Positions 10,065-50,380 of a DNA stretch of 64,000 bases are shown piece after piece. The position numbers were made by a program, and so were the translations under genes. Location: NCBI GenBank assembly GCA_019828565.1, contig JAHDYR010000053.1:1145044-1209043 (forward strand). The letters run 5' to 3'. Origin of the DNA: Carpediemonas membranifera BICM. Its lineage: Eukaryota; Protista; Fornicata. The notes under the pieces are model-generated. The model ran no database searches and was not told the origin of the DNA. It saw only the letters and a list, made by a program, of their open reading frames with translations. The first letter of the stretch is position 1. Each line of letters begins with the position of its first letter.

Positions 10065-10139
10065 TGTTGTTGGGAACGTTTATCCTTAAAATCTCCACTA
10101 AACTCTTGCGAGTCAAACCTGACAAAACCCTCAGCTACA
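10065..10139 (-). repeat. Gy-G 3' LTR (75 bp), contains the pol stop codon
   Basis: Direct repeat of 14064-14138; TAG of ORF 10135-12417 lies inside it. Confidence 0.9.
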
Positions 10140-13100
10140 TCCCGCTCTCCATGGCATGACTCGCTAAGTAGTCATCGAGCGCCTTGAGCTTCGCAACAAC
10201 CACATAGGGCTGCCAGTCCTCGCTGCCATCGGCCCATTCGACTAGGAACTCCTGCTCACCATTGTCCGTCACGTGCGTGTCCTTAATGCGCGACACCAGG
10301 ATCTCCATCATGTCTCGTCCGTTCATCGTCATCAGTTGCTCGCGCGTCCAACCGGTAGCGTCAAATTTGCGCACACGGTCGAAGTGGATGCGCGTCGTTA
10401 TGTCCTCATCCGGTCTACGTGCCGTGACTCCATAGTCATGCACCTGTACGACCTCATACGGTCCTTCCCATGTTGGCAGCAGCTTAGCTGCCCGTACACC
10501 CGGCAAGACCAGCACCCAGTCCCCGATCTCAACGCGTGGGTTGGTCCTGTCCGCCTGGCGTGCGCCCCTTCTCCTCAGGGTCTCGCGTTGCACCAGAACC
10601 GCGTCGTCGCGTGCTCGTCTCAAGTACTCCTCCTGCTCATCGCCTAGGTCCTGATCCTGGACCTCGATCGCCGTGGTCGGCTCTCGGCGTGGGAGTCCCG
10701 CGTGTGGCTCCGGCCCCATCAGGCCGTACACCAGCCGTGCCGCAGTCGTCCCCGTCGCCTCGGAGTACTCCGTGTTGAGCTGCCGCTGAACGAGGGGGAT
10801 GAACTTGTCCCACTGCTCAGCCTCGCCCCACTCCAGGACCATCGCCCGAAGTCTCTGCAGTATCCGTCTGTTCGCTCGCTCGCACCCACCGTTCGACGGT
10901 GGATGGTAGGGGAACGTCTTCGACTGTCCCGTCCCGAACCTCGCGACCAGAGCTGCGATCGTCTCGTTGATGAACTCACGCCCGTTGTCAGAGTGCAGGG
11001 TCGTCATCGGCCCATGGTTTCCGATCCAGCGCGTTATGGCGTCGGCCGCGGACGCGGCTGACTTGTCCACCGAGGGGTAGATCTCGACGTATCTCGTGAA
11101 TACGTCAATTACCGTGAATACATACTGAGCGCCGCTTTCGGCCTCTGGGGTGATCTTCAGCGTATCGATCGCGACTTTCTGGAACGGAGTCTCCACCATG
11201 TGAGTCCCCATCCTCAGTTGCAGTTGATCCACCGATGCGAGCTTCTGGCATGAGCAGTGGTCCACGAACGACTTCACGTCCTCCCACATGCCGCGCCACA
11301 CGTAGCCCTTCTCCTTCAGCGCCCTATACGTGCTGTACCGTCCCAGATGCTGTGCCATGCCCTTGTGTGCCCTGGTCACCGCCTCGCTCTTGCGCTCCTC
11401 GGTCATCTCGCCTGTAGCGAGCTGCCTGTCCCGGTCTCGCGCCTCCGCGGCGTCCTGCGTGAAGTCGGCCCTCTCCTCGGGGTCGTCGGCCTCGTCCGGG
11501 TCATCGTCCTCTTCCTCCGCGCTGGTGTCCTCCTCGCTATCCGCAATCTGCACGAAGTCGTCGTCTCCAAGCCTGTTGGGTCTGCGCGTGTGCCTCCTCG
11601 GCCTCGTCGCTGCCGCCTTCGCCTCTGGGAGGTTCCTTGACAGCGTGTCTGCGACCACGTTCGACTCACCCGGGAGGTGAATCACGTGGAAGTCGAACTC
11701 CTGCAATGCCAGTCTCCAGCGCAGCACCTTGGCCGACGCTGTCTTCTGCTCCATGCACGTGAGATTCTTATGGTCCGTCTCGATGGTGAACGTGTATCCC
11801 TGCAGATACATACGCCACTTCCGGATACACTCGACGATGGCGAATGCCTCCTTCTCACCGGTGGTCCACCGCTTCTCCGCCCCGTGGAACGCACGACTGT
11901 ACACCGCGACGACGGCCTCTTGACCGTCCTGAGTCCGGTTGCATAGCATACCCCCGAGCCCGACGTCCGATGCGTCAGTCCGGAGGATCAGGTCCTCGTT
12001 ATAGTCGATGTGGTTGAGCTTGATGTGGGCTTTGACCCCGCGCTGCACGTTCACGAACGCTTCCTCAAGCTCGGGCGACCATTTCACCTTCGCCTGCGTC
12101 AGTGTGTCATTCAGCGGTGCCAGATGCTCCCCCAGCTTCGGACAGAACCGTCGGAACCATCCCAACATCCCGATGAAGCGGCGCATCTCCTTCCTAGTCG
12201 TCGGGCGCGGCATGTCCATGATGGCCTGCACCCTGTCATCACCGAGTCTGATGCCGTCCTTGTCCACGATGTGGCCGAGAAACTCGACTGAGTCCCGGGC
12301 GAAGTCGCACTTCGCCGCGTTCAGCCTGAGGTTGTACTCTGCACACCGCTTCAGCACTGCCTCTAGCCGTGCCATCAACTCCTCGCGTGACCTTCCCATG
12401 ACCAGAACGTCGTCCATTTATATGATGACTCCTGATATTCCTTCAAAGACAGACTCCATGGCCTGCTGGAAAAATGAAGGCGCGTTCTTGAGCCCAAAGG
12501 GCAGTCTGTTGAACTCGTACAGACCCCCTGGCGTGACGAACGCCGTCTTGTGCCGGTCCTCTTCCACGACCAGCACCTGGTTGTAACCTGACTTGAGGTC
12601 GAGCGATGCGAAGCAGGTCGCCCCGCCCAGCTCCATTAGCACTCTCTGTACGTCGCGCACCGGCGCTGCAAGTGTCCGCGTGACTTCGTTAAGCCTACGG
12701 TAATCCACGCACAGCCTCCACGACCGGTCTTTCTTGCGTACCAGCACGATCGGCGACGCGAAGCTTGACTTTGACCGACGTATCACACCGGCCCTCAGCC
12801 ACTCCTCGACCTGTTTGTTGGCCACCTCCTCGAGCGCAGGTGCCAGCTGGCGCACCGGCTGCCTCCTGCCTTCTCATCGATGAGGGTGACGGGGTATGCC
12901 GGCAGCCTCGCCGGCGTCTCGTCTAGCGGGGCAAATACCCCGGTGAACCGATCTAAGAGTGCGGCGACGTCCGGTGCCGATCGTTCTCTCAGGTCGCTCC
13001 ACGCCGTGGCCTCCTCGGCCCGTATGAGGTCGTCGACCTCCTGGGCCGCCAGGTCATCCTGGGCCTCTCCTTCCTCCTCCTGGTCGGTCGGGCTCAGGCC

Positions 13101-13403
13101 CAGCGCGCGTATTGTCCCAAATGGGATCAACACGTTCTTCATCCCGGGGACTGCGTATATCTTGACCGGCACCGTCACGGACAGGCCCACTCCTGATCTC
13201 TTCCGCATCCGCACCCAGCCCTCTGCTGCAGCTACGGCCTCTACTTGACCGCCCACCCCGTGTATCGGGCCGATGTCTACCTCGGCCTCCGTCCATCCGG
13301 CGTGTACGCGCTCTGCGAGCCACGCGGGGCTGGCTAGAGCGACGTTGGCTCTCGTGTCGAGTCCGACTCTGAAACGGACGCCCGTCTTGGTCGGCTTTGC
13401 CAC
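10135..13403 (-). pseudogene. pol: Gy-G pol (PR-RT-RNase H-integrase-chromodomain)
   Basis: VGLDTRAN (PR-like), LCVDYRRLN, LDLKSGY, LPFGLKNAP, (Y>stop)MDD, TDASD, TDHKNL, SDNGREF, SNGGCER, FLVEWADGSEDW. One frameshift and one nonsense codon. Confidence 0.93.
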
Positions 13404-13429
13404 AAACTCGAGCGTTCCGCCCCATAAAT

Positions 13430-14063
13430 CCTGTTTAGAGCCCTCCGCCTCCTTGGCCTCCTTGAGGTGACGCGGATGACCCTGCGGGGGTTGCCTCGTC
13501 TGAGGCGTCCATACTTGCCGGTCTTGGTGTCATACTCTCGGTACCAGCCTGCTTTCAGGTCTTGGTCCTTCGTCACGCAACCGTGCGTCTTGTGGCCCTT
13601 CTGACCACACGCGAAGCAGCGGACCGTCACCTCCTTGGCTCCTTCCTCGACTGCCGGCTGCGGGCGGCTGCTGGAGTCGCCTCGACCCGTGTCCGACTTC
13701 TGACGAGTTGCGACGCGTTGCACGAGCCCGGTCCGCAGGGCCCTTGCGACCGCTGCATCCGCCTCATGGGCCCACTTTGCGGCCTCTGTGACGGCCTCGT
13801 CCAGCGTAGAGAGGTCCATCCTGCGCATATCGTCTTGCAGAGCGTCGCATGCCATGAGCTTGCGAAATGTCTTGATAAGGTCCTTCTCGCGCGGTCGGAC
13901 CTCGTCCTGGACCACCGAGAGTATCTCCCTCATCCTGGAGCTGACTGCGGCCACGTGATCCTCGAGGTGATCTCCGCGCTTCGCTGAGATCCCGCTCAGT
14001 TCAGCCAAAACGGCTGCTGCGTCCTCATGTGCCACTAGCTTGAGGAGCGCCTTGCGCACCTCC
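13430..14063 (-). pseudogene. gag: Gy-G gag, 5'-truncated
   Basis: Zinc knuckle CFACGQKGHKTHGC; the reading frame abuts the LTR with no start codon. Confidence 0.85.
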
Positions 14064-14138
14064 TGTTGTTGGGAACGTTTATCCTTAAAATCTCCACTAA
14101 ACTCTTGCGAGTCAAACCTGACAAAACCCTCAGCTACA
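14064..14138 (-). repeat. Gy-G upstream LTR (75 bp)
   Basis: Identical to 10065-10139. Confidence 0.9.
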
Positions 14139-17518: not shown

Positions 17519-20500
17519 CTATTCCACCTTGAAGCTGTTGTAAACCTTTGCCAGTTCCCGTAGTCCTGCCGTGAGGCCTTCCCAAATGTCCTCCGAGCCC
17601 CATATTATTAGTTGCTGTAATTCTAGGATGGGTCTTTCCTGGTACCATTCGCCCTGGGGGCCCTGCCTTACTTCCAAGTCCTTAGTTTTGTGCTTCGCTG
17701 CTGTCCACAGCTTTGTCCAAGCTTCTCCCCTGTCTACTGCCGGGCATTCACAGATTATGTGCGCTGCCGATCCTAGCCTCTGGCCCTCTGCCCACTCCCT
17801 GATCATTTCCTGCTTCCTTGCTGGTCCTGGCTTTTCCCTAATGATCCTGTAGAACAGGCTCACCTCCGACTCCTCCGAGCATAGGGGGCATAGTCTGCTA
17901 ATTTCTCTCTTCAGGTCAGCGCCTTGGGCCAGCTCTGTGATGGCTCTCATAGGGCCCTCCCTCTCTCTGCCGACGATGGGGATGGGCTGACATTGGCTGC
18001 AATGGATACAATTCTCTTCCATTCCGCCCTGCTTTGCCCCTTCCCAGCCTTTCGGTCTACCGTAGGCTTACCTTGCAGACACTTGCTTAATTTCCTTGTC
18101 CCCATGATTTCCATTAGTCCTAGTGCCGTACGGCTTTTGCACCGCTTCATCCACCCCCTCCTGATCGTTTCCATGCCATAATCCAGTAGCGCTGGTTTAG
18201 GGGCTCCTTCTCTGGTGCCCTCCAGTAGATGCTGCACTCTCTCCCTAGCTTCCCACATAACCGTGCCCCGCCCCCATTCTCTGTTTCTGACTGGTATATC
18301 CTGGTCCCTGTAGTTGACTATCCTTTTGACTGCCAGCCATTCCATGTGTGCCTGGAGGTCCACCCATCCATTCATCAGCCTCATGGCTGCGCCCCCTCCC
18401 GGTCCTGTTCCTGCCATGATTCCCTGCCAGTCATTCCAGATCCTTCTACCTCCCGGTGCGTTCCCCCACACCTCGACTCCGAAGAGGATCCTGGGCCATA
18501 TATATATTTCCAGTAGTAGCCTGCTTGCTAGTGCTGGCATGTTTGCCCTGGTCCACCCTGCCCATCTCACCAGTCTCTTGTACCTTTCGCTCTGCTCCTG
18601 TTTCCGCCTTATGCAGGCCGACATAGGGTCCTTCCCACTTGCGATCCATAATCCCAGGTATCTCGCCTCCTTCTCTGGCAGTAGTGTTACCCCCTCGATC
18701 CTGACTAGGGCTGTTCTGTCCACGCTAATCATTACATTCTTCTGGGCGTTCACCCTCATTTCATGCTCTCTGATTATGTCCACCATTATGTTGGCGACCA
18801 TCTGGCTATGCTCCGGTTTGCTCCCTGTGACCGCAGTGTCATCCACAAACATGGTAAGTGCTGCCGGTAGTCGGTCGCTGAGGTGGCTCGTGGTCCTTGG
18901 CGGTTCTCTGATGTCGTACCGTTCTCCCTTGATTTTCTTTCTGGCCAGGTGGGGCCAGTTAGCCATGAACAGCACAAACAGTGTCGGTGCCAGGACGCAC
19001 CCTTGCTTAACTCCCCTGTTGGTTCTTTTCCCATGCCTTTGCCCCCTTGACTGATATCCAGGTTTCCTTTATTGTGCCTTGAATTGCCCTGATCAAGTGC
19101 TCCTCCACCCCCATACCCTGTAGCTTATCCATGAGAATGTCCCTTGGTACCGTGTCATATGCCTTCTCGATGTCCAGAAAGATTGACGTGGTCTCACCCC
19201 CTCCTGGTGCCGCTGCACAATGTACTGTATCTGCTGGATGACGTCCCTGTCTGACTGGAAACCAGCCTGTTCTCTTGGTATGAACCTTTTCGTTGCTGCT
19301 TCCAGACGTATCTTGAGCAATCTACCATAGACCCTGTACAGCAGTGGTGTCAAGGATATTGGTCTATATGATTCCGGCTTGACCCTTGGCTTCCCTGTCT
19401 TGTGTATGGCCGACACTGTGGCATACTTCCATGCTTTGGGTACGTCGCCCTCCCTGTAGACCCTGTTGATGAGCCTCGTCACTTCCCTAAGGCCTTTCTC
19501 ATCCAGCTCTCTCAGCATGTCTCCAGATGTGAGGTCAGGCCCTGGTGCGGTGTCCCTCCTGATCCTTTTGATTGCGGCTTTGACCTCGCTTTCCTTGAAC
19601 TCATTTCCGTCCCTGCCCCTCCATGTCTTCCAGGTGGGTTCCCTGCCTCTGCTGACTCTAGCATACTGTTGCAAGAGGATCTCGCTGATGGCCGCCTTGT
19701 CCGTGGTTATCACTCCGTCCTTGAGGAGGCTCTCCGGCATTCCCTTGTATTGGTTGTCACACCACCACCTTCTGATGGCAGCTTCCACTGAGGCCCTTGA
19801 GGCCCTATACCCCCTTTGCACTTCTGCTGATGTCGGCCACCCATTTGGCCCTGCGCTCTCCCCAGTATTTCTCCAGCTCCTCTTTCATCCTTTCCTTCCT
19901 GGTCCTGTTGCCTAATTCTGTCCATGGGGTTCGCTGGAGTTCGCTCCACACTCCGTTCCCGAACACTTTGTCCCTTGCCTTTGCTCCCCTGTTGTTCACT
20001 GGGTCGCCCATGCATGCTCTTATAGTCTCTTCCCATTGGTCCGAGCTCTTGATCCTGTTCAGCTTTGAGACTGTGACTGGCCCCTCCTTCTTTTCATGGG
20101 CCAGGTGTGCACCTCGGGTATGGCCAGAGCCACGTCTCGCTCACTTCTGCCATAGTACCGTTGTTCCTTCCATGCTAGTGTGATTCCATTGTGTGCTGAG
20201 CCCCATACCCCGACCTTCTGAGACTCTACCACCTCAATCTCCGCCCCCTGGATTCCTGGTGTTGTCACTGCAAAGTCCGGGGTTGATGTTCCTGATGTGA
20301 GCGTCCCAGACTTGGGTATGATGGCTTTGAGCCTGTGCTTCTCCATCATATCCTTCCACCGGGTGGATCTTTCCATCTGGCCTGGGTCGATGTTCCAGTC
20401 TCCCATAATTATGGCCTCCATGCTCCCTTTCATGTCCATGATCTTCTGTATAGTGTCCCTGAATCCATCCTTCTCCTGCTTGCTGTGGCCGGATGGGGGC

Positions 20501-20958
20501 CATACACGTTGATGACTAGTATGTCCCTGCCGGTTCTCATTATGCTGGCTTGCACTCTTCCCGATAGGCTGTCCGATATGCCGATGTCCCACTTTGCAGT
20601 TGCGTGTGGGCTCACTATCGTGCCGATGCCTTCCCTTGTTCCCTTCCATCTTGGCGCAGGTTCGTCATTGCCTGCTATGCCTAGTTGTCGGTTGATGCGG
20701 TGCTGACTTTTGACATCCGCCTTTCGTTTTTCGTTGGCTAAGACCAGGTCCTCTTCCGTCTCCCTCCCTGCTAGTGCGTAGTCAAGGTCCATGAAGCAAT
20801 GAACCCTCGTATTCGCCGTTCTCCATGTCTCTTGTATGAGTACTGCCTCTATGTCCTTCAACCTTAGCTGAATCGCCGTTGCCATAGACGCCGTGAAGTC
20901 CTTTTCCTCTTCCTATGTGTCCCTCTGTGTTCAGACTAAGTATCTTGTAGGTTACCAT
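17519..20958 (-). CDS. LINE-1 ORF2 (APE endonuclease, RT, C-terminal CCHC), several frameshifts
   Basis: LSLNTEG, IQET, INVYGP, GDWN, TPDF, SAH; YRPISL, QAGF, GVKQG, FVDD, YLG; CPLC...HIICEC. Confidence 0.92.
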
Positions 20959-21291
20959 TGCCTTTGTCCTGTTTCCTTATCCTGCGAATTCCCAGAATTT
21001 GGGAGCCCCAGCTTCCCGCTCCTCTCCTGCTATCCTTGTCCTGACAAGGGGCCTAGATGCCGGTCTCGGTGACCCTTTGTCAGGCCAACCTTGTTACCAC
21101 CTGGTGACCTTCCATTCTTCGGGCAGGGTACTTAGGAGGGGGACGATATGACGTGACCCCCCCTTTGGCTGCCGCTACAGCCTACCGGCAGTGCATTTCA
21201 GCTAATGCCGGGCCCTGGGTGGGAGCCAGGGCTTGTGAATTATAAAGAAAATGTTGCTTGTTCCTTGAAAGAATACTGCTTTACCATGTCC

Positions 21292-24200
21292 TTACTCCTC
21301 CTCCGTGGACTCCCCACTGCCGCTGCAGCTGTCCTCGGCCTGACTCGCTTGCTGTCCTTGTAGACTCTGCATTACCATGATGAACTGGGTCATCAGGTCC
21401 ATGGGTGAGATCTGCTTGGCCTTCTTATCCTTCTTGTGCTTGTGCCGGGGGATCGTGGGCTTCTCCTTGCTGGGCTTAGTCGCGGCGCCGGAGAGCACCA
21501 ACCTTCCGTGGCCTTGCTCTTGCATGAGTCGGGCAGCCTTGAGCGCTGAGATCTCTTGTTGCGCCTCTGCCAACTGCTTTCGGAGCCGCAGCTTCTCCGA
21601 GTCCATGCCGGTTGCCTGTCTGCTTCCAGACTCCCAGTCCGTGTCCTCTTCGTGCCTGCTTCTCTTTCCGCTGTCCGAGTCCATGATCCTACTCGTGCTG
21701 CCCTCCTTGCGCTTGAGCGTCGTGGAGGAAGAGTGATCCTTGCTGTTGTCCATGCCTCCCTCTGAGCCTCTACCGGCCCAGGTGTTCCCGCTGAACGAGC
21801 CTCTCATCTGCGTTCCCGTGTTGTCCTTGTCTCTCCCTGTCGTCTCCTCCGTGGTTACGATCCGAGGTCCTGTTCATGTTACCAGCTCTGTCGCCGGTTC
21901 TGTCGTCAGCTCTGACACCAGCTCTACCGCCGGCTCCGTGTCCTACCCTTCTGTCCTCTTCCCTGTCTCCATGCTGGTCGTGATGTCCTTGATCCGCGTC
22001 CTGGCCGAAGTGCCTGCCCACCATCCTGGTGCTAATCCGCCTCGCCTTTTCCCTCCAGGCCGTTGTCGAAGAACCTACTTTGGTATGGCTGTTCGGACTT
22101 TCCGTCGATGGTGGGGACATACGTGATGCCTGGGACATTGACTGTGTTGGCTCTGGGCTCGTCCGGGATAGCTGCCGAGACTAGTCTGGCCCCTTCCTTG
22201 CGCATACGGCTTAGGATGGTCCCAGCCTCGCTGACCCTGACCATGCCCCAGTCTCTCGGGATGAAGCTCGCCCCTAGGGTGATCCTACCCCTGTTCCTGG
22301 GGGCCTTGACGTTGACTATGACCTTCTCATAGTCCCTGAGGCTCTCTGCTAGGTCGTCGCAGCCCCAGACTCCTTGATGAGCCGTAGCCTCCTTCGAGGG
22401 CCACCACTCGTATAGCATGGCCATGGTTATGATGTCCTCCTCCCTTGCTGCCCCTAGGCCCTTCCTGACGCGTACCATGCGGAGCTGGTTAGCCGTGGCT
22501 CTTTCCATGATGGTCCATAGCGGGCTTCTCTCCAGTACACCTTCGTTGTCCATGATTGTGAGGGGGGCCAGTAAGATGCCCTTCATGCCCAACAGAACCT
22601 CCCCGAACCCGAAGCCGATGCCGAAGCGGTGTCCGTTGTCCGGGACTACGAGGATCCTGTCGCCGACTTCCCTGCTGACGTCCCTTGCGTCCCCGATCGG
22701 GTACGTGCCGAAGATCTCAAAGGTGTCCCTCCTTGTCGCGAATTCCGGGCCTCCCATGATATCCATGCCCGGCTCCGCCTTCCCGACTGCTTCCATGGTC
22801 TTGTCGAGTGCCTTACCCATGTAGTGGTAGACGTCTGGGGTGCTCATCCTCTCCTTGCATAGGGCCCTGATCCTGGCTGTGAAGACTACTGTATCCGCCA
22901 ACCCACAGTGGTAGCAACCCGCGGTGTGTCTGTGGTACGGACAGACTCCCTTGGGCTCGCTCCTGTTCTGCCATCCATTTGACCATGTTGTTACTGCTTC
23001 CAGGTAGTTGGCCTTGTCGAGGTTGTCCCTGAGGTTTTGGCCAGCCTCCTCCCTTGCCGTTGTTCTCCAGGATCTCTGGTAGCTTCTTCTCGTCCACCAG
23101 CCTAGCTTGGAAGAATTCCCTGGTTCCTTGCTCCAGTCCATTTGTGGGGTTCGTGAGGAGGAAGCTTTCCATCTCCACCCCCTTTGCATACATGATTATC
23201 TTCCAACCCTCCGACCTTTCGATCCTTGCCAGCTGAGCCGCCAGGCGGTTGGCCCAGTCCCTGAAAGTATGTATGTGCTTCTCATACTCGATCGGCGGCC
23301 GCCCCGTCCCGACCTCCACGAAGGTGGCCGGCGGCAGCCCCGTCACTGCCCATGCCGTGTACCTCGCTTGGTCCATGCTTGCTGCCGGTATGTCCTGGTA
23401 GTACAGGCCATGCCCATGTCCAAGAATGTCCCCAGTGCTGAGGTCAAAGAGTACGATCCCGCCCTCAACCGGGATGGCAGGGATCCCTGCCTTCTTGACG
23501 CCAGGGTCTGCGCACTCGAAGTCGATGGCTCCGATCACCAGTCGTTTCTCCTTGTCCTTTCTAGGCATCCTCGGCGGCTGACTGCTGTCCTTGTTTGAGT
23601 CGACCTCCTCGTCCTGGTCGATCTTGCCTTGGTTGGCCCCGACCATGTCCTTGTTCACTTCCAGGAGGCTGTCGTCGAGGCTTCTCCTGCCGGGCATGGT
23701 GGCCTGCTGGCGTCGTTCCTCCTTGTCCTTGACATGTTGCTCCTCGTCTCCGTCGATGACCGTGCTAGCGGACGACCTGTCCAGATCGGCATGTTCGTCC
23801 CTATTGCTGCGGACCGAGGTGGCCTTGAGCACTTCCAGCCTCACCTTCCGGAACGGCGGCTCGTTGCTAAGGGGGGTCTCCTCCCCTTCGCCCAGGATAT
23901 TGGTTCTGCCCTTCAGGTAGATCCCTGACTTGTTCCATGCTGCCTGCCATATGGCCGGGGCCTCCGGTGCCTGAAGCCTGAGGATGTCCCTAGCCTCCTC
24001 CATGAAGCGGCTGATGGACCATGCTGACGTGTCGCTTAGCTCTAGGATGACCCTGTACTTGCCGTCCTCTTGCTCGTAGGCCACTCTGGTGACCGGGCCT
24101 TGGTTTGCCGGATCCCATACCTTGTCGTAAGGCACGCCTTCTACGGCCTCGTCTCCATGAGCCCCTGATACCAGTATGAACGACCCTTCGGCCTTCTTGA

Positions 24201-24798
24201 CGCTGTCCCTGTCTACATCCCATTCGATGGGCCCATCTTCCTTCGGCTTGAGAATCGCCGTCTCGATGTCCTTCTCAGATGGCCATCTTGCCATGCCAGT
24301 GAAGCCCGCTTTCAGCGTCTTGGGCTCCAGTGCCTGTGCCATGTCCTTTGCTTCCTCGTCTCTGGGGTTGAGCGCCTCTGTGAGCATGTAGAAAAGGTCG
24401 CGGAGGCCGTGGATGCCGCATGGGTTCCTGAGGATGATGTCCTTGTTGTCAGTGACGCCGGTTGCGAAGAGGATGCGTCTGGCGTTCATGATTACTTCCT
24501 TGCGTCCTTTGGAGTTCGCATTGAGCGACTTTCCTGTAAACTTGCCTGTTCTACGAAGAAGTAGGGTCCTTGAATCGTTCCTTTCAGCGAGGAAGCTGTC
24601 CAGTAGTTCCCTGATGTCCTCCCACTGCTTCTGCGTGGAATCCCTGATCCTTGTCGGTATTTCTACCTGCATTGTTGAGTGCAAAATTTCTCCCCTTTTC
24701 CTAGTCCATAAACTGGGTCGGAATTTTTGGGTCCGAAAGTCGGGCCACATGTACATATCCGGGTGAGGTCTCCGTCCAGGCCTTCCAGTTTCTCCCAT
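21292..24798 (-). CDS. LINE-1 ORF1 (about 1150 aa when stitched) with Maelstrom/DEDDh-like domain and C-terminal coiled coil
   Basis: ORFs 22813-24798, 22032-23189, 21770-22138 and 21292-21807 are colinear with LINE-3 ORF1; IDFE...PVEG...AKGVEME...CPYH...HCGLAD. Confidence 0.85.
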
Positions 24799-27148: not shown

Positions 27149-27211
27149 TGTGAAGCGAACTGTTTATAGGTAAACCGTCTAAAGGTAAAAATGGTCTAAA
27201 CTACCGTGACA
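27149..27211 (-). repeat. Gy-A 3' LTR (63 bp)
   Basis: Direct repeat of 37878-37940. Confidence 0.95.
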
Positions 27212-31180: not shown

Positions 31181-31288
31181 TGTCAGCCATTTATATATGA
31201 GATACGTATTTGATACGGTCTTGATCCGTCCAGCTCGACACCCTTGTGTCGAGCTCTCTTTGTAAAGTCTTTTTCCTTAGTGATCACA
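31181..31288 (+). repeat. Gy-B 5' LTR (108 bp)
   Basis: Direct repeat of 37508-37615; TATATAT box and internal 10-bp hairpin. Confidence 0.95.
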
Positions 31289-31299
31289 GTAAGCTTACT
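31288..31299 (+). promoter_or_regulatory. Palindrome AGTAAGCTTACT at the primer-binding-site position (Gy-B)
   Basis: Perfect 12-bp palindrome starting at the last base of the 5' LTR; no TGG tRNA-type PBS. Confidence 0.85.
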
Positions 31300-31308
31300 T
31301 CCAAACTA

Positions 31309-34300
31309 ATGGATAAGGGACCTTTATGTACACAGCCTGAGATTCACGCAGTCCTCTCATTTGCCGAGAAATTGGATAAGCATGTTCGCTCGGGCGGAAA
31401 GAGGCGCTTGCTTAAGCGACTCGGACCCGCGGTGACCTCATACTGCAAGGCGATGGGTACTGATATTACCAGAAAGTATCAGGCCGCAAAACATCACGAT
31501 GATGGCTCCAAAAGAACGAAGCACGAACGCGAGGACATCGTATTCCAGGCGATTGTGGACATTGTTAAGCCCTCCGATGCGATCCTTGAGCGCCGCCTTT
31601 TCGACCTATCGACCACTGGTATCGATATTGGCCGCCTATCTCTCTATATCGACCGCTTCGCTTCCCGCCGCCGTCTCATTGCACCCACGGGCAAGGATTC
31701 AGTCCTTCGCGGCCAGTTTTTGCGCGGAATCCAAGACGAAACGCTCAGAGAGGAGGTTTCTCACGCCTCCAAGGGTCTGTCACTTGACGCGACCTTTTCG
31801 ACCGCCCTCCTGACATGTAAGCGTCTGGAGGAAGCAATCAAGCTCACTTCAACGTCCAAGCCTGCCCCTGCTCAAGAGCGCGAACGCTCTAAGCAGTCCG
31901 CTGTCCGCAAACGCCCCCCGCGTGAGCAGCGCGAGCCTCAGGATCAGCCGCGCCAAGACAAGCGGCAGCAACACCAGCCCCGCCAGTATCAGACGCACTT
32001 CCACCAGCAAGGCCAACGTCACGGTCAGCGTCAGCAGCAGACGCAACACCACGGTCACCAGCGAGACATCGTATGCTTTAACTGCGGCAGGCCGAACCAC
32101 CGCGCTTTCGAATGCACCAGAGAGAAGGCCGTGTGCGCGAAGTGCGGCAAGTCGGGGCACCTAGACAAGTTCTGTCAGGTAAACCCCAGATCATGCTTCT
32201 CTGTCTCTGTTTCTACGTCGGCGGCTGAAGGCCAGCGCTCCCTACCCGTCGTGAGTGCCGTCGTCCCTATGGGTAGCGACGAATCTACCACATGGCACCG
32301 TGTCTTATTCGACTGTGGTGCTGACATTTCTCTTGTCAACCCGGCTTCCGCCAGAGCGGCCGAGCTCATTCCGACGAAGCTCGCTGCACCCATTAAGATC
32401 AAGACTCCGGGTGGAACGATCGAGACTGATACGTGTTATGAGGTGCCGTTGAAGATGTGTAAGTCACCTTTCACCCCGAAAGGTCTATCCACCACAGTCT
32501 CCGCGTATGGGGTTGACTGTGCTTATGATCTCCTCTTGTCATATCAGACCATGGTCGAGTGGGGTATTCTCCCCAGCTTGTGTGAACCGTCTCAGTCTGA
32601 CAATGAAGACGCCTTGGAGCCTTTCGTGCCAGAGCCTGAGCCGCTCCAGGCGTATACTCTGTCTTCGGACTACACTCTCACTCATGACCGCATCCTCGCA
32701 GCTTATGCTCATTGCTTTGATGCTCGAGAAGGGTTCTCAGCATTAGAGCCATACGACCTCGTACTCAAGGAGGACCGCGTCGTCGCCACGAGATCCAATT
32801 ACATACCGTACCAGAAGCAGGGCCTGTTCGACGAGCACGTCAACGAACTACTGTCGAAGAAATACATCGAGGCCAGCTTCTCGCCATACTCTTCTCCAGC
32901 ATTGCTCGTCCCCAAGGGCAAGGACAAGACCAGGATGGTCGTAGACTTCCGCAGAATCAATGATTTGACCACGCCATTCGACTATCCGATCCCCGAGGTT
33001 AACACGTGCTTGACCAGGCTTGCTGGTGCCAAGGTCTTCGCCACTCTCGACCTCTCGAAAGGGTATCACCAGGTCGAGCTGACCGAGCGTTCTAGGCAAT
33101 ACACGGCGTTTATGACCCCCCGTGGGAAGTTCCAATACACCGGAATGCCGTTCGGCCTGAAGAACGCTGGCGCGCACTTTCAGTACGCGATTGAGCGCGG
33201 GTTCCAGGACCTCTTAGGCGACGCCTGCATTATATATATAGATGACATTATCATCTTTGGACGCTCGGAGCAGGAATATCTGGCCAACCTCGCTAAGGTG
33301 CTCCGCCGATGTGACGAGCTCAAGCTATCGTTGAACAAGGAGAAGTCGCATTTCGGCCTAGCCGAAGTGGAGTTCCTAGGATGGGTTGTGTCCGGCTCGG
33401 GTTTCCGGATTGCTCCAGACAGGATCCGCGATGTAGAAGGCCTGCGGCTACCGAAGACGAAGAAGGCCACGCAGGCCCTTATGGGATTCCTCAACTTTAT
33501 GAGAGACTTTGTTCCTAACTTCTCCGAGCTTATCCGACCGTTAGCCCGGGCGGCAAGCGGCAAGGAGGCTCCGGACGGATTACCTCAGGCAGAGGCGCTG
33601 GCCAAGGTTAAGGACCGCCTCTGCCACGCACCGGCACTCGAGCACTTTGACGTTTCGAAGGATCATGTGGTCATGACAGACGCGTCTGATCTCGGGATCG
33701 GGGGTGTTCTCCTCCAGGACGGCAAGCCGGTGTGTTATATGTCCCACGCGTTCTCAGATGTGCAGACGCGTTGGAGCACGATCGAACAGGAAGCGTATGC
33801 GATTGTCACCGCCCTCCAGAGGTGGCGCCGTTTCCTGTGCTGGACGTCGTTTACTCTCCTCACTGACCACCGGAACCTGGTCTACATGTCACGATCGTCT
33901 AACGCAAAAAGTCCAGCGTTGGTACGAGTCAATCGCAGACCTAGACTTCACAGTGAAGCATGTGGCCGGGGTTGACAACGGAGCGGCGGACGGGCTGAGT
34001 CGAGTCTTCTCCGCAACTGCCAGACAGGCAACAGCTACCGATGACGAGATCCAGGCAGCTCATATGCACGGCCAGGCCCACCTCCCGGTTTATACGACGG
34101 TAGAGTGGCTGAGATCTAACGGGCTCCGGGCTCCAGTGGATAGGGTAGCGCGGGTCATGGATCGTTGCCCCGTGTGCCAACTTACCGCCAAGCCGGCCGA
34201 GGCGTCCAGACCGTACCTCCACACGGCGAGCCTGCGACCGTTCCAGCGGGTAGCCATGGATACTATTGGCCCCCTGCCAGAGTCTCGCGGGTACAAGTTC

Positions 34301-35272
34301 ATCTTAGTTATTATTGATATGGCCTCGCGGTGGACCGAGCTCGTCCCACTCAAGTCCACAAGGGCGGACGAAGCTGTGACTGCCTTCGTCAACGGATGGA
34401 TTCTCCGGTACGGCGTGCCCAGAGTTCTACAGACAGACGGTGGCAAGCAGTTCGTCAACAAGCTATTCACAGATCTATCGGTGCGCGTAGGGTTTGCTAC
34501 TCACGTCACCACCCCGTACCATCCACAGTCAAACGGCATTGTGGAACGGGCGAACAGCCGCATTGAGCGCATTTTACGCAACAGGCAATACCAGCTTCGG
34601 AGCGAGTTGTGGTCAGACTCCCTCCCTGTCGCGCAGTATATCGTCAACGCGTCTCCCCACACCGCGACACGCTTAACACCGGCCGAGGTCATCTTCGGTA
34701 GCGATTTCCGTGTCCCGGCAGACGTGATGATGGCAGACGTCCAGAGTATGGCTGGACAGCCCAGCAGTAATGTTCAAGCAGCTCAGTTAGCCCGAGACTT
34801 GGCAGAGGCGAGAATCAAGGTCATGCACCAAGATGCGCTAGACAAAGTGTCAGCAACGACACCTATCTCGTCCGACTATGTGTTGGTCAAGTACCCGAAT
34901 GGACCGCCGTCCAAGTTGGCGTCAGGATGGCGAGGGCCTATGAAGCTAGTGCGTCCTATCGTGAGGCAGAACCTCACGGTGGGCTATGTCGTCAAGGATG
35001 TCAACACAAAGAAGGAGTTCCAAGTCGCCTCGGAGAGAGTTCGCGCCTTTATGGGTGAGTTGTCCGAGCAACGGGCTCAGGAACTCGCGGCAGTCACGCT
35101 CGGTGAATATCTGGTCGAGTCCATACTAGAGTCGACGAGTGAGGCCAGGATGAGAGACAGGAAGTTCCGGGTTAGATGGCTGGGATATGAGCCGTCAGAG
35201 GACACATGGGAACCATATGGGAATGTCAAGGGTTGTGAAGCACTGGATGTATTCCTGGGAAGGGCCAAGTAA
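31309..35272 (+). CDS. gag-pol: Gy-B gag-pol single ORF (two CCHC knuckles, PR, RT, RH, IN, chromodomain); one frameshift in an A5 run at about 33908
   Basis: CFNCGRPNHRAFEC, CAKCGKSGHLDKFC, LFDCGA, YIDD, TDASD, TDGGKQF, YLVESIL...FRVRWLGYEPSEDTWEP. Confidence 0.95.
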
Positions 35273-35301
35273 ATGGCGCCCAGAGAGAGTCACAATCTGA
35301 T

Positions 35302-36630
35302 TTATTCAATGGCACCAAGGCTGTCACCAAGCTCAAAGAAGATGCCGTCATGCTCCCAGCGCCGACGAACACGACGCCATAAGTTATGCTCGTTGAGATA
35401 ACGAGTGACAGGCATGGTGCGGCAAAGATCCTGGGTCAGGAAGGTCAGTGACGGCAGCGGATAGCCCGAAAACTGGACGAGCAGGATGAACGACTCCTCC
35501 TGGCGGGCGTTCTCGTAGAGCTCGATGTGCTCTTTGACCTCCACCACACCGTACGCGGCGGACGTGTCCGTGAGCTGGAGCGTGAACAGCTCCTTGTTCA
35601 TGGCAAGCTCCATAGCCGGGAGATGCTCAAGCCGGACACAGGTCCAATAGGCCCGAACGAAGTCGCGGGAGCGGGTGGCGGTCAGGCGCGAGGCACCGCG
35701 GTTCTCAGCCGCCATAAGCAGCGAGAACATGGCTGGGTGTCGGCCTGCCATCACCACGCGCTTGAGGAGGTCCACCACCACATCACGAGAGACCGTGGCA
35801 CCCGGCTCTCGAGTGCGCTTCAGCGCCAGGAGGGCTCCCTCAGCTGTGGCGACGTGGTTTGTGGCAAACCGGTCGCTCGTCCCGCCCTGGACCAGAGCCG
35901 CGGCTACGGCGCGAGTGTCTTGGACACCCTCCATGGAGCGCTGGAGAGCGCACCCGATGGCCGTCACCTCCGCGAACCGACGAAGGATGTCGGCAGAGAC
36001 GTAAGCAGCCGTGACCTCGGTCATAGCGCTGCCGAAGAGCTTCCCGGTCTGAACTCGGTCGAGGAGGGCTGTGAAATTGACTTCGAAGCAGTTGGAGAAG
36101 CGAGCAGTGCTGATCTCCGCAAAGGTGGTGCGGAAGGTCTCGACCTGACGCTGCTCGCGTGCCGGAAGAGGTTCGGCGGGCTCGGTCGGCTCGGCGACGG
36201 TCACAATAGCCCTAGGGGTTTCGACATTGGCGCGGTAGCGGGTCTGTCGGTGGAATGGGCGGACAGGGACCTCTACGACACGCTGGTTGAACTCAGCGCC
36301 CAGCTCACTCGTGCGGGTGATTGTGGTCTGAGCAGATTCGGGATGGCAGTCGGTGATGTGCCGTCCGGAGCGTCGAGGTCGGAGAACGGTGCGATCGGGA
36401 GCTGAACCAGCTTCTTGGTGCGAAATGGCATCACCATCGGTGTTCTCAGCGGTGTTTTCAGTGGATGGAGGCGTGTGAGAACCTTCAGTAGCTTCCTGGG
36501 AGCCGTCACCATTCAGCAGCTCGACATGCTTTCGCTTCAAGGCCTGAAGATCGGAGATGAGCACACCAGTAGGATTGGCCGTCATATACTGGTCGATTGC
36601 AGCAAAGAGTTCCTCCTCTACGTTTGTCAT
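35302..36630 (-). CDS. Gy-B antisense accessory ORF (about 442 aa) with C-terminal chromo-like domain
   Basis: Uninterrupted ORF inside the LTRs, homologous to 62427-63249 in Gy-D; TATATAA about 55 bp upstream; stop within AATAAA. Confidence 0.8.
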   Translation of the reverse strand: MTNVEEELFAAIDQYMTANPTGVLISDLQALKRKHVELLNGDGSQEATEGSHTPPSTENTAENTDGDAISHQEAGSAPDRTVLRPRRSGRHITDCHPESAQTTITRTSELGAEFNQRVVEVPVRPFHRQTRYRANVETPRAIVTVAEPTEPAEPLPAREQRQVETFRTTFAEISTARFSNCFEVNFTALLDRVQTGKLFGSAMTEVTAAYVSADILRRFAEVTAIGCALQRSMEGVQDTRAVAAALVQGGTSDRFATNHVATAEGALLALKRTREPGATVSRDVVVDLLKRVVMAGRHPAMFSLLMAAENRGASRLTATRSRDFVRAYWTCVRLEHLPAMELAMNKELFTLQLTDTSAAYGVVEVKEHIELYENARQEESFILLVQFSGYPLPSLTFLTQDLCRTMPVTRYLNEHNLWRRVRRRWEHDGIFFELGDSLGAIE

Positions 36631-36896
36631 AGCGCCGTTTGAAATCTGGGAGGCGTCCCAGATTTGATTTACATGTATACATGAGTTATATAATCTCAGG
36701 AGGACACCCACCGCGCAAGTTACAGACGCTGAGCACGCCTGTATAGCCAATACTGGCCAAGGGACAGCCGTTCACGTATTCTCTCGCGCGTTTTATGCCG
36801 AGACGAGATCTCGAGGAAAAGGGGAAGAAAAACACCTCCAAGAAGTGATAATGGACAAAGTTTATACGAAGAACGTGGTTTTGATGTTGGTTATTC

Positions 36897-37094
36897 ATGA
36901 TGGAGCTCGTATTCTGGGCACAAGAAGTCCGAGCGGAGACGAAGAGAAGAAAACTCCCGTATCTCGCCAAGGAAGCGGAATTGGAGCTAGTTAACTGCAT
37001 TTTTGAAGCCTATGTAAGAAATAGCGGAAGAGGAGCACAAACCGCCAACTATTCCGAATCAAGCCGAATGCATGACATAACCTGCACGGTTTGA
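36897..37094 (+). CDS. Gy-B small sense ORF or exon with conserved PxLxxE...FExYVR motif
   Basis: The motif recurs at equivalent positions in Gy-C and Gy-F with synonymous changes. Confidence 0.5.
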   Translation: MMELVFWAQEVRAETKRRKLPYLAKEAELELVNCIFEAYVRNSGRGAQTANYSESSRMHDITCTV

Positions 37095-37507
37095 TGCAAT
37101 CAGACAGAACACTGGTATGTATCGACTACTAGGAGGGGCAGGATCCCCAGGTAAGATACCCATGACACAGCGCGCTTATTTAGTGGTACCACGAGTCTTT
37201 TCGAATCTGTAGAATCTTTGCGCAATCTAGAAAATCTTTAGAGAATTTCCGTGGGTGGACTCCACGCCGGGCGATGGCTTAGGACGCTATGTCGTCAGCC
37301 TAGTCAACGGATACTATCCGGCGTACACGCAAGTCCCGTGTGCGCGACGGTCAGCCCTCTAAGTTGAACTTAGTTGGCATCCCCGGATCACTGGTCATTC
37401 CCCAGCGATCGACGGTTATAGGGTCAGCACTCTTGGGCTGTTCCCCCAAGACCTGATTAACAATGGTATCCTTTTCGTGATGCTCTTAACAGAGCATGGG
37501 GGGGAAG

Positions 37508-37615
37508 TGTCAGCCATTTATATATGAGATACGTATTTGATACGGTCTTGATCCGTCCAGCTCGACACCCTTGTGTCGAGCTCTCTTTGTAAAGTCTTTT
37601 TCCTTAGTGATCACA
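37508..37615 (+). repeat. Gy-B 3' LTR
   Basis: Identical to 31181-31288. Confidence 0.95.
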
Positions 37616-37866: not shown

Positions 37867-37878
37867 AGTATTAATACT
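37867..37878 (-). promoter_or_regulatory. Palindrome AGTATTAATACT at the PBS position (Gy-A)
   Basis: Perfect 12-bp palindrome overlapping the last LTR base. Confidence 0.85.
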
Positions 37879-37940
37879 GTGAAGCGAACTGTTTATAGGT
37901 AAACCGTCTAAAGGTAAAAATGGTCTAAACTACCGTGACA
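37878..37940 (-). repeat. Gy-A 5' LTR (63 bp)
   Basis: Identical to 27149-27211. Confidence 0.95.
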
Positions 37941-38672: not shown

Positions 38673-41600
38673 TTACCCGTCTTTCCGGAGGTTCAGAAGG
38701 GCACGTCTGCCGTTCTGCAGTCCCTCTCTGACGGTATGGTCCTCGCTGCGGAGGAGCCAGAGCATTTCCAGGATTTCCCTTGAGTTGTACCACTCCGCCT
38801 CCTGTCCTTGCCTTAGGGCGTGGTACTGTGTGCGTAGATGCGCCTCCGCCAGGATGTCATTCCATCCTTCTGGGCGTTCTACCGCCTTGCATTGGCAGAT
38901 GATGTGGCTTTGTGTTCCCAGGGGCTGGTTGTATGCCCATTCTGAGAGGATTTTGGTGGTTTCCGCCGCGGTTCTGGTGACAGTGTACAGGCGAGTAATG
39001 GTGTCACCTTCTGAGTCCAGGGTACATAGGGGGCAACACCGCTTGATCCTGCTCAGGAGGGCCTGGGGCTGGCCGATCGCGCTCCCAAGTATGGCTCTGC
39101 TTCTGCCACTGTTGCTGGGGGAGGGGAGTGTGTTGGATGCAGTCATGATTACTCTCTTGACTTCCCGTCTGGTTATCATCTCACCCTTGATCATTCCTGG
39201 TTTCTTGGGTCTCTTCCCTTGCTGCATGCTGAGGATGACTTCCGGGGCTAGTACTGTTGCCACCCCTTTGGCCGTTCGGCTCCCGGTGTGCAGTAGTTCT
39301 TCTGCTGTGAGGGTCCAGCCTCCCCTCTTTGCTCTTTCCCTGGCCGGGTCGTGCGCAGACTCATAGAGCCTCACCGCTCTCTGCCCCATATCTGCCTCCC
39401 AGCACATCCATCCCATTAGTACACGGGCGGCTCCTCCTCCCCCTGGTCCTGTGCCTGCCATTAGGCCGCGCCAGTTGTTCCAGATGGCTCTTCCCCCTGG
39501 CGCTTGGCCCCAGATCTCGATCCCGAACTCGATCTTGGGCCAGAGGAAGGTTCTGAGGATGGATTCCGAGGTGGCGGCCGGGGTGGATCCTTTGGTCCAC
39601 CCTGCTCTCCTTGCCAGGGCTAGGTATTTCCGGGATTGTGACGTCTTCATTTTGATGCATGCTGCCAACGGATTCTTCCCGCTGGCTAGCCAGAGTCCCA
39701 GATACCTTGCTGAGTCTGACGCCAGTGTGGGAGTTCCTTGGATGCTGACCGCTGCAGTTACGTCGGTACTTATCACCACACTTTTGCCTGGGCTGGTCTG
39801 GAGTCCATGGGCTTCAATTACCCTGACTACTGCGTCTGTGCCTTCTTCGGCGAGCTGCGGGGTCTCGGCTGAGATGCTTGTATCATCTACAAACATTGCA
39901 ATGAGGCAGTTTTTGGGCCTATCGTCCGTTGGAGGGAGGCAGGGGTCCGGGATCTCTCTATGCCGGAGGTACAGTGCCGCCTGGCTTAGCCAGTTAGCTG
40001 TGAAGAGGATGAACAGAGTGGGGGCCACCACACATCCTTGCTTGACCCCCATGTTTGTTCTGGACCATGTGCTTGCCCCTCGTACCGAGATGTACGTTTC
40101 TGTAAGTGTATTTCGGATGGCCCTCGTCAGTCTTGGGTGTACCCCCATGAGCGTCAACTTGTTCACCAGCAGGTCCCTTGGGACCGTATCATATGCTTTT
40201 GCTATGTCAAGTAGGACGCTGGTACGGTTTCCGGACTGGTGGAGTTGGGCTAGGAGGGCTATGTGATCCACTACAGTTTTCCCTTTCATGAACCCAACTT
40301 GCTCTCTGGGGATGAACTTCTCCACCGTCGGCCTGAGGCGCCATTTCAGTATCCTCCCGTAGGCTCTGTATAGGAGGGGGGGTGAGGGAGATCGGTCTGT
40401 ACGAGCTGGGCGTGAGCTTGTCCTTCCCAACCTTGTGGATAGGCGACACCGCTGCATACTTCCATGTGGTTGGCATGGTCCCGCTGTCGTATACTTTCGC
40501 GAGCAGGACTGTGATTGCCTCGTACGCTGACTCGGGGAGGTCCCTCAGACAATCTCCAATAATCCCGTCCGGGCCTCCGGCCGAGGACTTCCTTATGGAC
40601 TTGACCGCCGCTGTCACTTCTTCAAGCGATGGCGGATGGTCCTCCATGTCCGTTTCCGGCTCGGTTTCCCAGGTGGGTTCCCAGGTGGGTTCCTTCCCGG
40701 AGCTTACCTTCGCGTACTGCTCCTGGAGGGAGTCTGCAATCTCCCTCTGCCTTGCTAGAATCTTGTTTCCAGCCTTCAGCATCACCGGGAGACCGGCGTG
40801 CTGCTTCTCGTTCCAGAAGCGGAACACTTGGTTTGCGAGGATCCTTTTTGTCGTTTTGTACCCATCACGGGATCCAACCTCAACCTGCTCATTCCAGTCA
40901 TGTTGGAAGGTCCTCCATGATCTGCTCAGTGCTCCGTTGAGGGACTTTTTGATATCTTTGGCGGCGGTTTTGCTCCAGGTGGAGGCTTTGGCCAGCCGTT
41001 CCCATACCTCACTAGGGATACGTTCCTGGTTTTCTACAGCGAATGGGTGCCTTCTGGAGGTAGCAAACCCGGTGGACAACCATTTCCTTATGAGAGTCTC
41101 CATCTCGTCCACTGGTATTTTGCTGTCTAGTGGTGGCCACTCTTCTAGCTTGGGCCCTGTTCTCCTGGGTTTGACCAGCCACGTATCGATCCGTGGGATT
41201 TCCAGTCTCTTTGATATCTCTGGTTTCCCTGTCGGGTTGCTATCCCAGGTGAGCTCTATGGCTTTGTGTGCCGACCCCCAGTGCCCGATTGTGGTCTTGT
41301 CTATTACCCTAACAACCGGGTTTTGGATACCCCCTGTTACCGCTGCATAGTCTATTGTGGACGTTCGGGAGTTAGTCCCGTACGTCGGTGCAGTTGGTGC
41401 TATTGGGGTGAGGTTCCATCGCTGGAGGGTCATCGCAGTTGCTTGCCTGAGTTTCCCTGGCCTCCTGTTCCAGTCCCCGATGATGATGATGTCACACCCC
41501 TCATAGTTCGCGACGGTTTGCTCTAGCATCCGGTCGAACTCCTCAATCTCGGGTCGTGCACATCCACTATCGGGAGCGTAGATATTGATGACTGCCGTGG

Positions 41601-41928
41601 CCCTCGATGCTTTGAGGATGCTTACTTGGATTCGTGGGTTCGTCCCGTCGGACACGCCTACGTCCCATTCCGCTTTGGAGTGCGGGCTAATCAGTGTGGC
41701 CAGTCCCTTTGTGGGTCGCTTGCGCGTTGCCTCTAATGGCTTGACCTCTCCTGCACAGGCGTACTGGAGATCTACCCAGCAAGGGATGGTGGTATTACCG
41801 TACCGCTTGGTTTCCTGGAGGAGGATCGCATCAGTCCTTATCCTCTTGCGGATGGATAAAGCTATGGATCCGCTGTAATCGTTTGCGCCCGCTAGGTGCC
41901 CTTCGCTGTTTAGCGATATTATTCTCAT
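38673..41928 (-). CDS. LINE-2 ORF2 (APE-RT-CCHC), one frameshift in a homopolymer run at about 40380
   Basis: ISLNSEG, LQET, INIYAP, GDWN, TIDY, SAH; YRPISL, LDIAKAYD, GVKQG, FVDD, YLG; CPLC...HIICQC. Confidence 0.93.
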
Positions 41929-49404: not shown

Positions 49405-49601
49405 TGTAGTCAATATTAATATCTACCAATATCCCTGGGAGGGTCCAAACCTCTTTTTACTCGTAAACTCTTTCTCTTCCAAACCACAGTACTAGTACTT
49501 ACCTATGGGTAGAGAACAGAAAAAACAAGCGCCGCTCCTGAAAGAGGCAACATTCAGCGCTTTCGTAGCTTTTACGACGTCACTGCGTGACTTTAAGGCT
49601 A
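49405..49601 (+). mobile_element. Gy-I 5' end: 84-bp LTR (49405-49488), palindrome, gag start (ATG 49505); gag resumes at 58029 after LINE-3
   Basis: TG...CA segment interrupting Gy-C integrase. Reconstructed gag MGREQKKQAPLLK...RDFKARGGKAKLRKLISPEIQSY aligns with the Gy-B gag N-terminus. Confidence 0.8.
49488..49499 (+). promoter_or_regulatory. Palindrome AGTACTAGTACT at the PBS position (Gy-I)
   Basis: Perfect 12-bp palindrome between LTR end and gag ATG. Confidence 0.8.
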
Positions 49602-50380
49602 AGAAAGAAAGAAAGAAAGAAAATTTATGGTGCCTGGTATCGGGCCCCGGTTACTTAGGCTGATCTCCCTTATTACTGGAGCCGAGTTCCCCGGGCGCTG
49701 CCTCCTCCCTGCGATTGAACTTGTCAGCTGCGTCCAACGAGCGATTCGGTGCTACTGCTTCCGCTCACTCCCGATTTCACTTCCCCCCATAGGCCTTCGC
49801 CATCTCCGTGCGCTGAGCGCTTTCCTGTCTCCCTGTAAACCCGGCAGCTTCCAGGGAGCCTGGGGGTCTGTCCTCGGTGCTTCCACAGGCAGGTTTGTCC
49901 TGCAAGACCTTCTCTATAGCACTCCCTGATTCCCTGCAGTCCCTACGGGGTCGTTCAAGCATGGCACCCTCTCCTCTTTCCAGATTCCCTGTTCAGTGCC
50001 CCCACGACCCTGTTAAGTGGCCTACCCGTGGGCGGGGAAAGCAACTAAGTCCCTCTCATCTACCCCCTGTTAGGCGGCGTGGGTTAGGGCTAACACAGAC
50101 TCTAGATCTGCAAGGCCTAGTACCCCTTATGATAGTTCTCTTGTGCTACACTTCCCAGCGTCCCTCTATCGTTCACAAGGGCGGCGGGGACGTCATGTCC
50201 CCCCGTATCCCATGCTCAGTCCCTGCAGTTTCCTTAGGTTCACCGCGAGTGGTGCAACCATCCAATTGATGGATTTCCTCTGTCCCTGGCCCTGCCCTCT
50301 CCCTGGGAAACATGGGGGGTCTCCCCTTGATCCCAGAGTCTATGCTTCCCTGCCCCCTTTCTGGATGTGGTGTTCCTTAT

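Follow-up and report, generated by a model that had tools for sequence, protein, structure and literature searches.

The minus-strand primer of an LTR retroelement can end nowhere but at the junction between the 5′ LTR and the body. To our knowledge, all well-studied LTR retroelements use a host tRNA to begin the minus strand, except those of the Tf1 group, which use their own 5′ end. The window analysed here, a stretch of 64,000 nucleotides from the genome of Carpediemonas membranifera, holds four gypsy elements (Gy-A, Gy-B, Gy-D and Gy-I) that carry a palindrome at this junction. This raises the question of how such elements start reverse transcription, and with what molecule their palindromes pair.

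The gypsy elements of the window and their 5′ LTR junctions

The earlier note on this DNA had placed a perfect 12-bp palindrome at four junctions, and rereading the sequence confirmed all four, each overlapping the final A of its LTR. The features referred to below are as follows, with positions in the window unless a locus is given.

31181–31288 (+): Gy-B 5′ LTR, 108 bp, TG...CA, with an AT-rich box (31190–31199), a hairpin (31232–31256) and TGTAAA (31262–31267)
31288–31299 (+): Gy-B palindromic primer-site candidate AGTAAGCTTACT; it starts on the final base of the 5′ LTR
31309–33975 (+): Gy-B gag-protease-RT-RNase H frame, ATG at 31309, with zinc knuckle, RVP_2, RVT_1 and RT_RNaseH
33704–35272 (+): Gy-B integrase with a C-terminal chromodomain (PF00385; Pfam)
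37508–37615 (+): Gy-B 3′ LTR, between the polypurine tract GGGGGGGAAG and the target duplication GTAG; no palindrome
37867–37878 (−): Gy-A palindrome AGTATTAATACT
37878–37940 (−): Gy-A 5′ LTR, 63 bp, with an identical 3′ LTR at 27149–27211
about 49405–49488 (+): Gy-I LTR; a LINE cuts the element off near 49600
49488–49499 (+): Gy-I palindrome AGTACTAGTACT
about 58278–58379 (+): Gy-D LTR; chromodomain gypsy body to about 62401
58379–58390 (+): Gy-D palindrome AGTAACGTTACT
31232–31256, 58320–58343 and 63298–63321 (−), and L001 at about 7616–7639 (−): LTR stem-loop
37183–37192 and 63632–63641, L001:7961–7970 and L004:845–854: motif of a conserved block before the 3′ LTR

Gy-B is a complete element of 6.4 kb whose two 108-bp LTRs are 100% identical and which is flanked by the target site duplication (TSD) GTAG. 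Gy-D is 78% identical to it, with an LTR 80% like that of Gy-B, and has its chromodomain (PF00385, Pfam) at 61442–62401. The LTR ends of Gy-B and Gy-A are set by LTR pairs, Gy-D and Gy-I being without a 3′ LTR in the window; the Gy-I junction is the same in 18 genomic copies. Pfam matches place protease, RT, RNase H and integrase in this order along Gy-B, Gy-A and Gy-D, a chromodomain also lies at the integrase C-terminus in relatives, and the best PDB match of the Gy-B RT-RNase H is Ty3 (E = 4.6e-64). The elements are Ty3/gypsy (Metaviridae) of the chromovirus branch, which gene order, chromodomain and LTR features all match.

All four palindromes are immediately preceded by CAC and start at the LTR-final A. 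The in-frame gag ATG follows after 9 nt in Gy-B, 10 nt in Gy-A, 5 nt in Gy-I and 4 nt in Gy-D, within the 4–10 nt given previously. It had also been said that every intact 5′ LTR junction of the window has this structure: the palindrome is indeed present in all four, with the correction that Gy-I is only a 5′ stub and that Gy-A has its body divided by Gy-B, which is nested inside it.

Window elements of which both LTRs are seen have LTRs of 63–108 bp, and the range across the elements of this genome is 63–128 bp, with the start codon 0–25 nt from the palindrome in most families. The surveyed elements described below have LTRs of 69–128 bp, lengths of 4.1–6.4 kb and target duplications of 4–5 bp. 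Thirteen LTR pairs have TG...CA ends, purine-rich tracts ending in AG or GA (e.g. GGGGGAAG) upstream of the 3′ LTR and TSDs of 4–5 bp; LTR pairs and target duplications together fix the LTR end at CA. NTAAA lies 14–53 nt upstream of the LTR end in all 15 LTRs inspected (TGTAAA in Gy-B), and TAAA(C/G) occurs within 25 nt past the stop codon in candidate host genes of the window, the cyclin gene included, so that NTAAA is probably the poly(A) signal of the organism, as judged from a few genes, and would leave a very short U5.

Several other features of the window were recorded. The LTR stem-loop, with the core TCGACAC/GTGTCGA, is common to Gy-B, Gy-D and two relatives, and its outer pairs covary between families (AGC/GCT versus ACT/AGT). 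A stretch of about 2.2 kb in Gy-B (35273–37497), from the integrase stop to the polypurine tract, lacks any Pfam match. About 300 nt upstream of the 3′ LTR, three related elements have in common a conserved block in which a PPT-like GGAGGGGCAG with a small GGGG/CCCC hairpin is succeeded by CTTA...A and by a second palindrome, GTGGTACCAC, that does not vary. The antisense frames in the 3′ part of Gy-B and beside Gy-D show no mutual relatedness and no Pfam match. A copy of the L002/L003 family at 10061–14138 (−) has its 5′ LTR end, palindrome and gag start replaced by unrelated sequence, leaving no intact junction. Three related LINE (non-LTR) elements, at 50613–57350, 38673–41928 and 17947–24798, all on the minus strand, encode an endonuclease/exonuclease/phosphatase domain and an RT; the first of them truncates Gy-I, its 3′ end being marked by an (AAAG)n run at about 49600–49626. 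A host gene with a cyclin N-terminal domain lies at 7499–8587 (+), and an Rfam search of the window gave no match.

Palindromic junctions across families and their covariation

Elements were located by their RNase H domain and not by the palindrome, which avoids circularity. The survey comprised 20 RNase H-anchored loci, out of 848 candidate gypsy RNase H matches in the 24.2 Mb assembly, with LTR pairs obtained by self-alignment; six small loci were sampled in addition. A 5′ junction could be defined in 14 of the 20 central elements, and all 14 have a perfect palindrome overlapping the LTR end; the remaining six (L001, L004, L005, L007, L009 and L012) are 5′-truncated or interrupted and gave no junction. 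Adding the junctions of neighbouring elements brings the number of families in this genome to 17. An exhaustive protein search, which also matched proteins of Andalucia godoyi, yielded eight further elements, six in GCA_002919055.1, one in Aduncisulcus paluster (BQXS01) and one on an environmental contig, the last with an LTR of about 510 bp, and a palindrome of 12–14 bp was found at the same place in each of these eight elements from outside this genome. A word-based protein search returned only distant plant-like and insect-like gypsy elements, which were left out of the analysis. Of the 25 5′ junctions that could be defined, representing more than 20 families, all 25 have a perfect palindrome of 10–14 bp overlapping the LTR end; their sources are 17 families of this genome together with six elements of GCA_002919055.1, one of A. 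paluster and one of the metagenome contig.

Perfect palindromes of at least 10 bp number 290 in 264 kb, about 1.1 per kb, and the chance of one starting in the last three LTR bases is about 0.003 per junction. Across the genome, ACAGTA-NNNN-TACT is found 234 times, compared with 41 times for the reversed control, and among the first 100 of these 234 the core is self-complementary in 89, versus 6% expected. Sites outside the AGTA...TACT pattern also exist, for example CATTGAATTCAATG, within which the gag ATG lies, CAATATATATTG, ACAGTGATCACTGT, AATACTAGTATT and CAGTAATATTACTG; the gag start codon is within the palindrome in the L002/L003 family. The palindrome at the LTR junction is real, lineage-wide and strongly selected.

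Three candidate cases were considered and rejected. Six hits with a CTCG core, taken as possible non-palindromic variants, are internal RT-antisense sequence of another repeat and not LTR junctions. An LTR pair at L004 that seemed to lack a palindrome belongs to a minus-strand element, and AGTAATTACT adjoins its LTR. A 16-bp palindrome at C1:1574666 might have been the trace of read-through into a partner primer, with LTRs head to head, but its flanks are not inverted repeats. As a separate observation, tandem gypsy arrays with common LTRs occur at C1:899865–911708, C3:199176–209857, C8:590178–599183 and locus L011, the spacing of their palindromes or RNase H hits being 3943, about 5334 and about 4356 bp.

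Examining palindromicity and covariation across post-LTR junctions had been proposed as a check, and both are evident: all 25 junctions are palindromic, and in the 24 that were tabulated, centred on the palindrome, arms and core covary. Mirror pairs 1–5 are complementary in 24/24 junctions with three or four pair types per position, and mirror pair 6 in 21/24, while pairs 7, 8 and 9 are complementary in 6, 2 and 5 of the 24, that is, at the level of chance, which means that there is no flanking stem. The LTR-final A occupies mirror position 5 or 6. In a maximum-likelihood RT-RNase H tree, the families lie 0.3–1.3 substitutions per site apart, and sister families differ by compensatory flips: Gy-B (AGCT) and Gy-D (ACGT) have one pair flipped, Gy-A (AGTATTAATACT) and its sister L009b (AATACTAGTATT) are separated by two pair changes, and P0013 and P0014 differ at three pairs. 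Arms and core both vary and yet stay symmetrical, a pattern that marks base pairing and not a protein site.

The junctions contradict the idea that the core is a family-specific pairing code, since different families have the same palindrome. L019 and L020 both have CAGTAATTACTG, five families have the core GTAATTAC, AATACTAGTATT is found in two and AGTAATATTACT in several.

Covariation also bears on the possibility that the site acts in DNA, as the target of a dimeric protein or as a methylase- or nuclease-type site, or is a by-product with no function. Every core is a restriction-site-like hexamer, Carpediemonadida have horizontally acquired adenine methyltransferase genes, and a gene adjoining one gypsy element of GCA_002919055.1 (L034:768–2330, −) combines an RT domain with a weak match to Dam, an adenine methyltransferase, which fits retrotransposon-borne methyltransferases (bioRxiv 10.64898/2026.05.21.726589). 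A protein site would, however, conserve bases and not symmetry alone, and the constant register of the site relative to the LTR end suggests a role in reverse transcription, so that a site acting in DNA, or one with no function, seems very unlikely.

The search for a pairing partner

If the site is selected for base pairing, its partner might be a tRNA, another part of the same transcript or a second copy of itself. Priming by a tRNA or tRNA fragment, as in most LTR elements or in copia, is the default for Ty3/gypsy. The absence of a tRNA-type primer-binding site (PBS) had been noted in the window, and it extends to the whole survey, with TGG following the LTR in 0/25 junctions. There are at least 15 different palindromic sites, nothing else is conserved between LTR and ATG, and a tRNA primer would leave the symmetry unexplained. 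No tRNA gene lies within the genomic DNA sampled, and among the matches listed the palindrome hits coincide with none of the 63 located tRNA genes, a comparison made by coordinates; tRNA fragments were set aside only by logic and by these gene coordinates. We consider a tRNA-derived primer scarcely credible.

A partner in cis was sought in the LTR, downstream of the site and along whole elements. The 12-mers had been said to have no complement in the LTRs, and a duplex scan agrees, staying at the level of shuffled controls in 14 of 15 LTRs. The 150 nt downstream likewise have no excess of complementarity to the site over shuffles (duplex scan, 14/15 families), and 8-mers of the site do not recur elsewhere on either strand in nine complete elements. 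The sole outlier is GAGTTTAGTG in the L003 LTR (L003:2081–2090), a 10-nt stretch that could pair with the first 10 nt of the palindrome (L003:2136–2145), three of the pairs being G-U (z = −3.35), and is either chance or a Tf1-like remnant.

These scans weigh on Tf1-type self-priming, in which the first bases of the transcript would fold back onto the site. Its appeal is that these elements are chromodomain gypsy lacking a tRNA PBS, as are Tf1, Maggy and Skippy (PMC6934838), and that the L003 LTR offers the complement just described. The other 14 LTRs have none above shuffled controls (the transcript starts being taken to lie within the LTR), the 8-mers of the site never recur in whole elements and the palindrome would be left with no reason to exist, all of which makes this route highly improbable.

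Fold-back of the site on itself is a different matter, as the RNA could be cut past the palindrome and the 3′ arm could fold onto the 5′ arm as a mini-hairpin, copying its own U5-R. The geometry fits, with the 3′ arm paired beside the LTR end, and a hairpin has been proposed for the fungal GalEa elements (PMC5445492). Yet the central 2–4 nt would then be a loop, and they are always self-complementary. The predicted energy of the hairpins is only 0 to −3.7 kcal/mol, with the centre unpaired and no hairpin formed by 10-nt sites, against −10.6 to −23.4 kcal/mol for the homoduplexes, which upholds the earlier argument that a hairpin does not account for a palindromic centre; these energies are predictions for naked RNA. 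A downstream second copy akin to that of GalEa is also lacking, and fold-back in cis appears to us improbable.

For 132-nt leaders, 13 of 15 predicted dimers make their intermolecular contact through the palindrome. No pairing partner is in sight other than the same site on a second molecule, and selection for the pairing of two identical strands, as the earlier note had suggested for two genomic RNAs, is the best reading of the covariation, the predicted energies and the missing complement elsewhere.

Proposed priming on a partner RNA and its relation to known systems

The site adjoins and overlaps the last 1–3 bases of the 5′ LTR. Since the CA end of the 3′ LTR adjoins the target duplication, the first minus-strand deoxynucleotide must be laid down within 0–3 nt of the LTR end, and a start at this distance requires the 3′ end of the primer to pair with the first bases of the palindrome. 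From this geometry and from the sequence comparisons above, we suggest, at a probability of roughly 45%, that in this lineage of chromodomain Ty3/gypsy elements, which would not depend on tRNA, the minus strand may be primed at the palindrome through its pairing with the same site of a second RNA. Their placement agrees with this, as the self-priming Tf1-type elements belong to the chromodomain Ty3/gypsy group too (PMC6934838).

The palindrome might alternatively be a dimer-linkage or packaging site only, with the true primer, a host small RNA or a protein, coming from elsewhere and acting at the same place. Covariation proves the pairing of identical strands and not priming, and retroviral dimer initiation sites are palindromic, as are parts of the lentiviral and MMTV primer sites (PMC8096270). 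However, the 3′ end of the primer has to pair inside the palindrome, 0–3 nt from where the LTR ends. As many host primers would be needed as there are different palindromes, at least 15, and the stretch from LTR to ATG is otherwise unconserved. Palindromes can overlap a PBS, and those of the MMTV PBS are dispensable for dimerisation (PMC8096270). A role in dimerisation or packaging alone is in our judgement unlikely.

Self-paired priming may be pictured as an RNA-dimer start, which we put forward tentatively and with slightly less confidence than the priming site itself. Co-packaged genomic RNAs would pair through the palindrome, the RNase H of the element would cut one of them and the cut RNA would prime the other, so that 10–14 nt could serve as dimer linkage, primer, PBS and translation-to-replication switch. 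Two genomic RNAs, or one and a 5′ fragment, would form a duplex of 10–14 bp, and the element RT/RNase H would cut one strand 1–3 nt inside the 3′ edge of this duplex. In AGTA-NNNN-TACT families the cut would fall after ...TAC, in agreement with what the earlier note proposed, with the C opposite the first post-LTR base. The new 3′-OH, paired to the first post-LTR base of the partner, would then be extended through U5-R. The primer-template duplex would measure about 10–11 bp, the same size as in Tf1, in which RNase H makes a similar cut in the duplex of the element's RNA. Dimer formation would compete with translation, because the start codon is so near in most families and within the palindrome in L002/L003.

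The scheme has its difficulties. A long partner-derived primer (R-U5-palindrome), if untrimmed, would let plus-strand synthesis run past the palindrome, and the self-complementary end of the plus-strand strong-stop DNA could snap back on itself. Cutting both RNAs of the dimer would leave no copy of the site for the second strand transfer.

The lack of a tRNA site, the lack of a complement in cis and a covarying self-complementary site together point to a third solution to the priming problem, which would couple genome dimerisation directly to priming and, if true, would explain how elements with LTRs of 63–128 bp and almost no leader replicate. Such families may be overlooked or ranked too low by LTR annotation software that requires a tRNA PBS.

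Among known systems, Ty3 of Saccharomyces cerevisiae, which primes with initiator tRNA-Met, has the closest solved RT-RNase H and the same gene order, TG...CA LTRs and short target duplications, whereas the elements described here have LTRs of 63–128 bp and a palindrome in place of the tRNA site. The HIV-1 DIS palindromes, 6 nt long, lie in a hairpin loop and are additional to a tRNA PBS. They too are self-complementary sequences of the 5′ leader able to join two genomic RNAs, but the present sites have no flanking stem (pairs 7–9 being at chance) and no separate PBS. Tf1 takes its primer from its own RNA: a non-palindromic site pairs with the 5′-terminal 11 nt of the transcript that carries it, in a duplex of about 11 bp, and the cut is made by the RNase H of the element. 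Both it and the elements studied here are chromodomain Ty3/gypsy with no tRNA PBS, but here no such complement of the site was found in the LTR and the site pairs only with itself. Self-priming elements of the Tf1 group that lack a tRNA PBS include Tf1, Tf2, Maggy, Skippy, Cft-1 and others, all chromodomain Ty3/gypsy (PMC6934838).

The nearest precedent is fungal, and the statement that no description was known is not supported: the palindrome of the GalEa copia elements is already published (Donnart et al. 2017, PMC5445492). In the literature accessible to search, this paper and one that cites it were the only hits for such a palindrome. tRNA-independent priming was known before, and a structural precedent for the palindrome exists in copia elements; what is added here is the link to GalEa, the complement test over whole elements, the energy comparison, the tree and the rejection of the family-code idea. 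GalEa elements (Ty1/copia, Pezizomycotina) have no tRNA PBS and carry after the LTR a 9-nt sequence, CTGATCAGT or CTAATTAGT, which becomes a palindrome once the LTR-final A is added (ACTGATCAGT or ACTAATTAGT) and whose variants fall at mirrored positions (Donnart et al. 2017, PMC5445492). This Conserved Hairpin Site forms a hairpin with an inverse-complementary copy, CHSeq2, 12–41 nt downstream, and its mechanism was left open (PMC5445492). The absence of a tRNA PBS and a post-LTR palindrome that includes the LTR-final A are common to both groups. The Carpediemonas-type elements differ in having no CHSeq2-like copy (the 150 nt downstream being at chance, with no 8-mer recurrence), and their palindromes are longer (10–14 bp) and far more varied. 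They are also chromodomain gypsy elements of metamonads as opposed to copia elements of Pezizomycotina, and a search for copia-type RT (PF07727) in this genome gave no match, the control genomes giving none either. The metamonad junctions would be a second, independent example beside the fungal palindrome, which could be a convergent or a related case.
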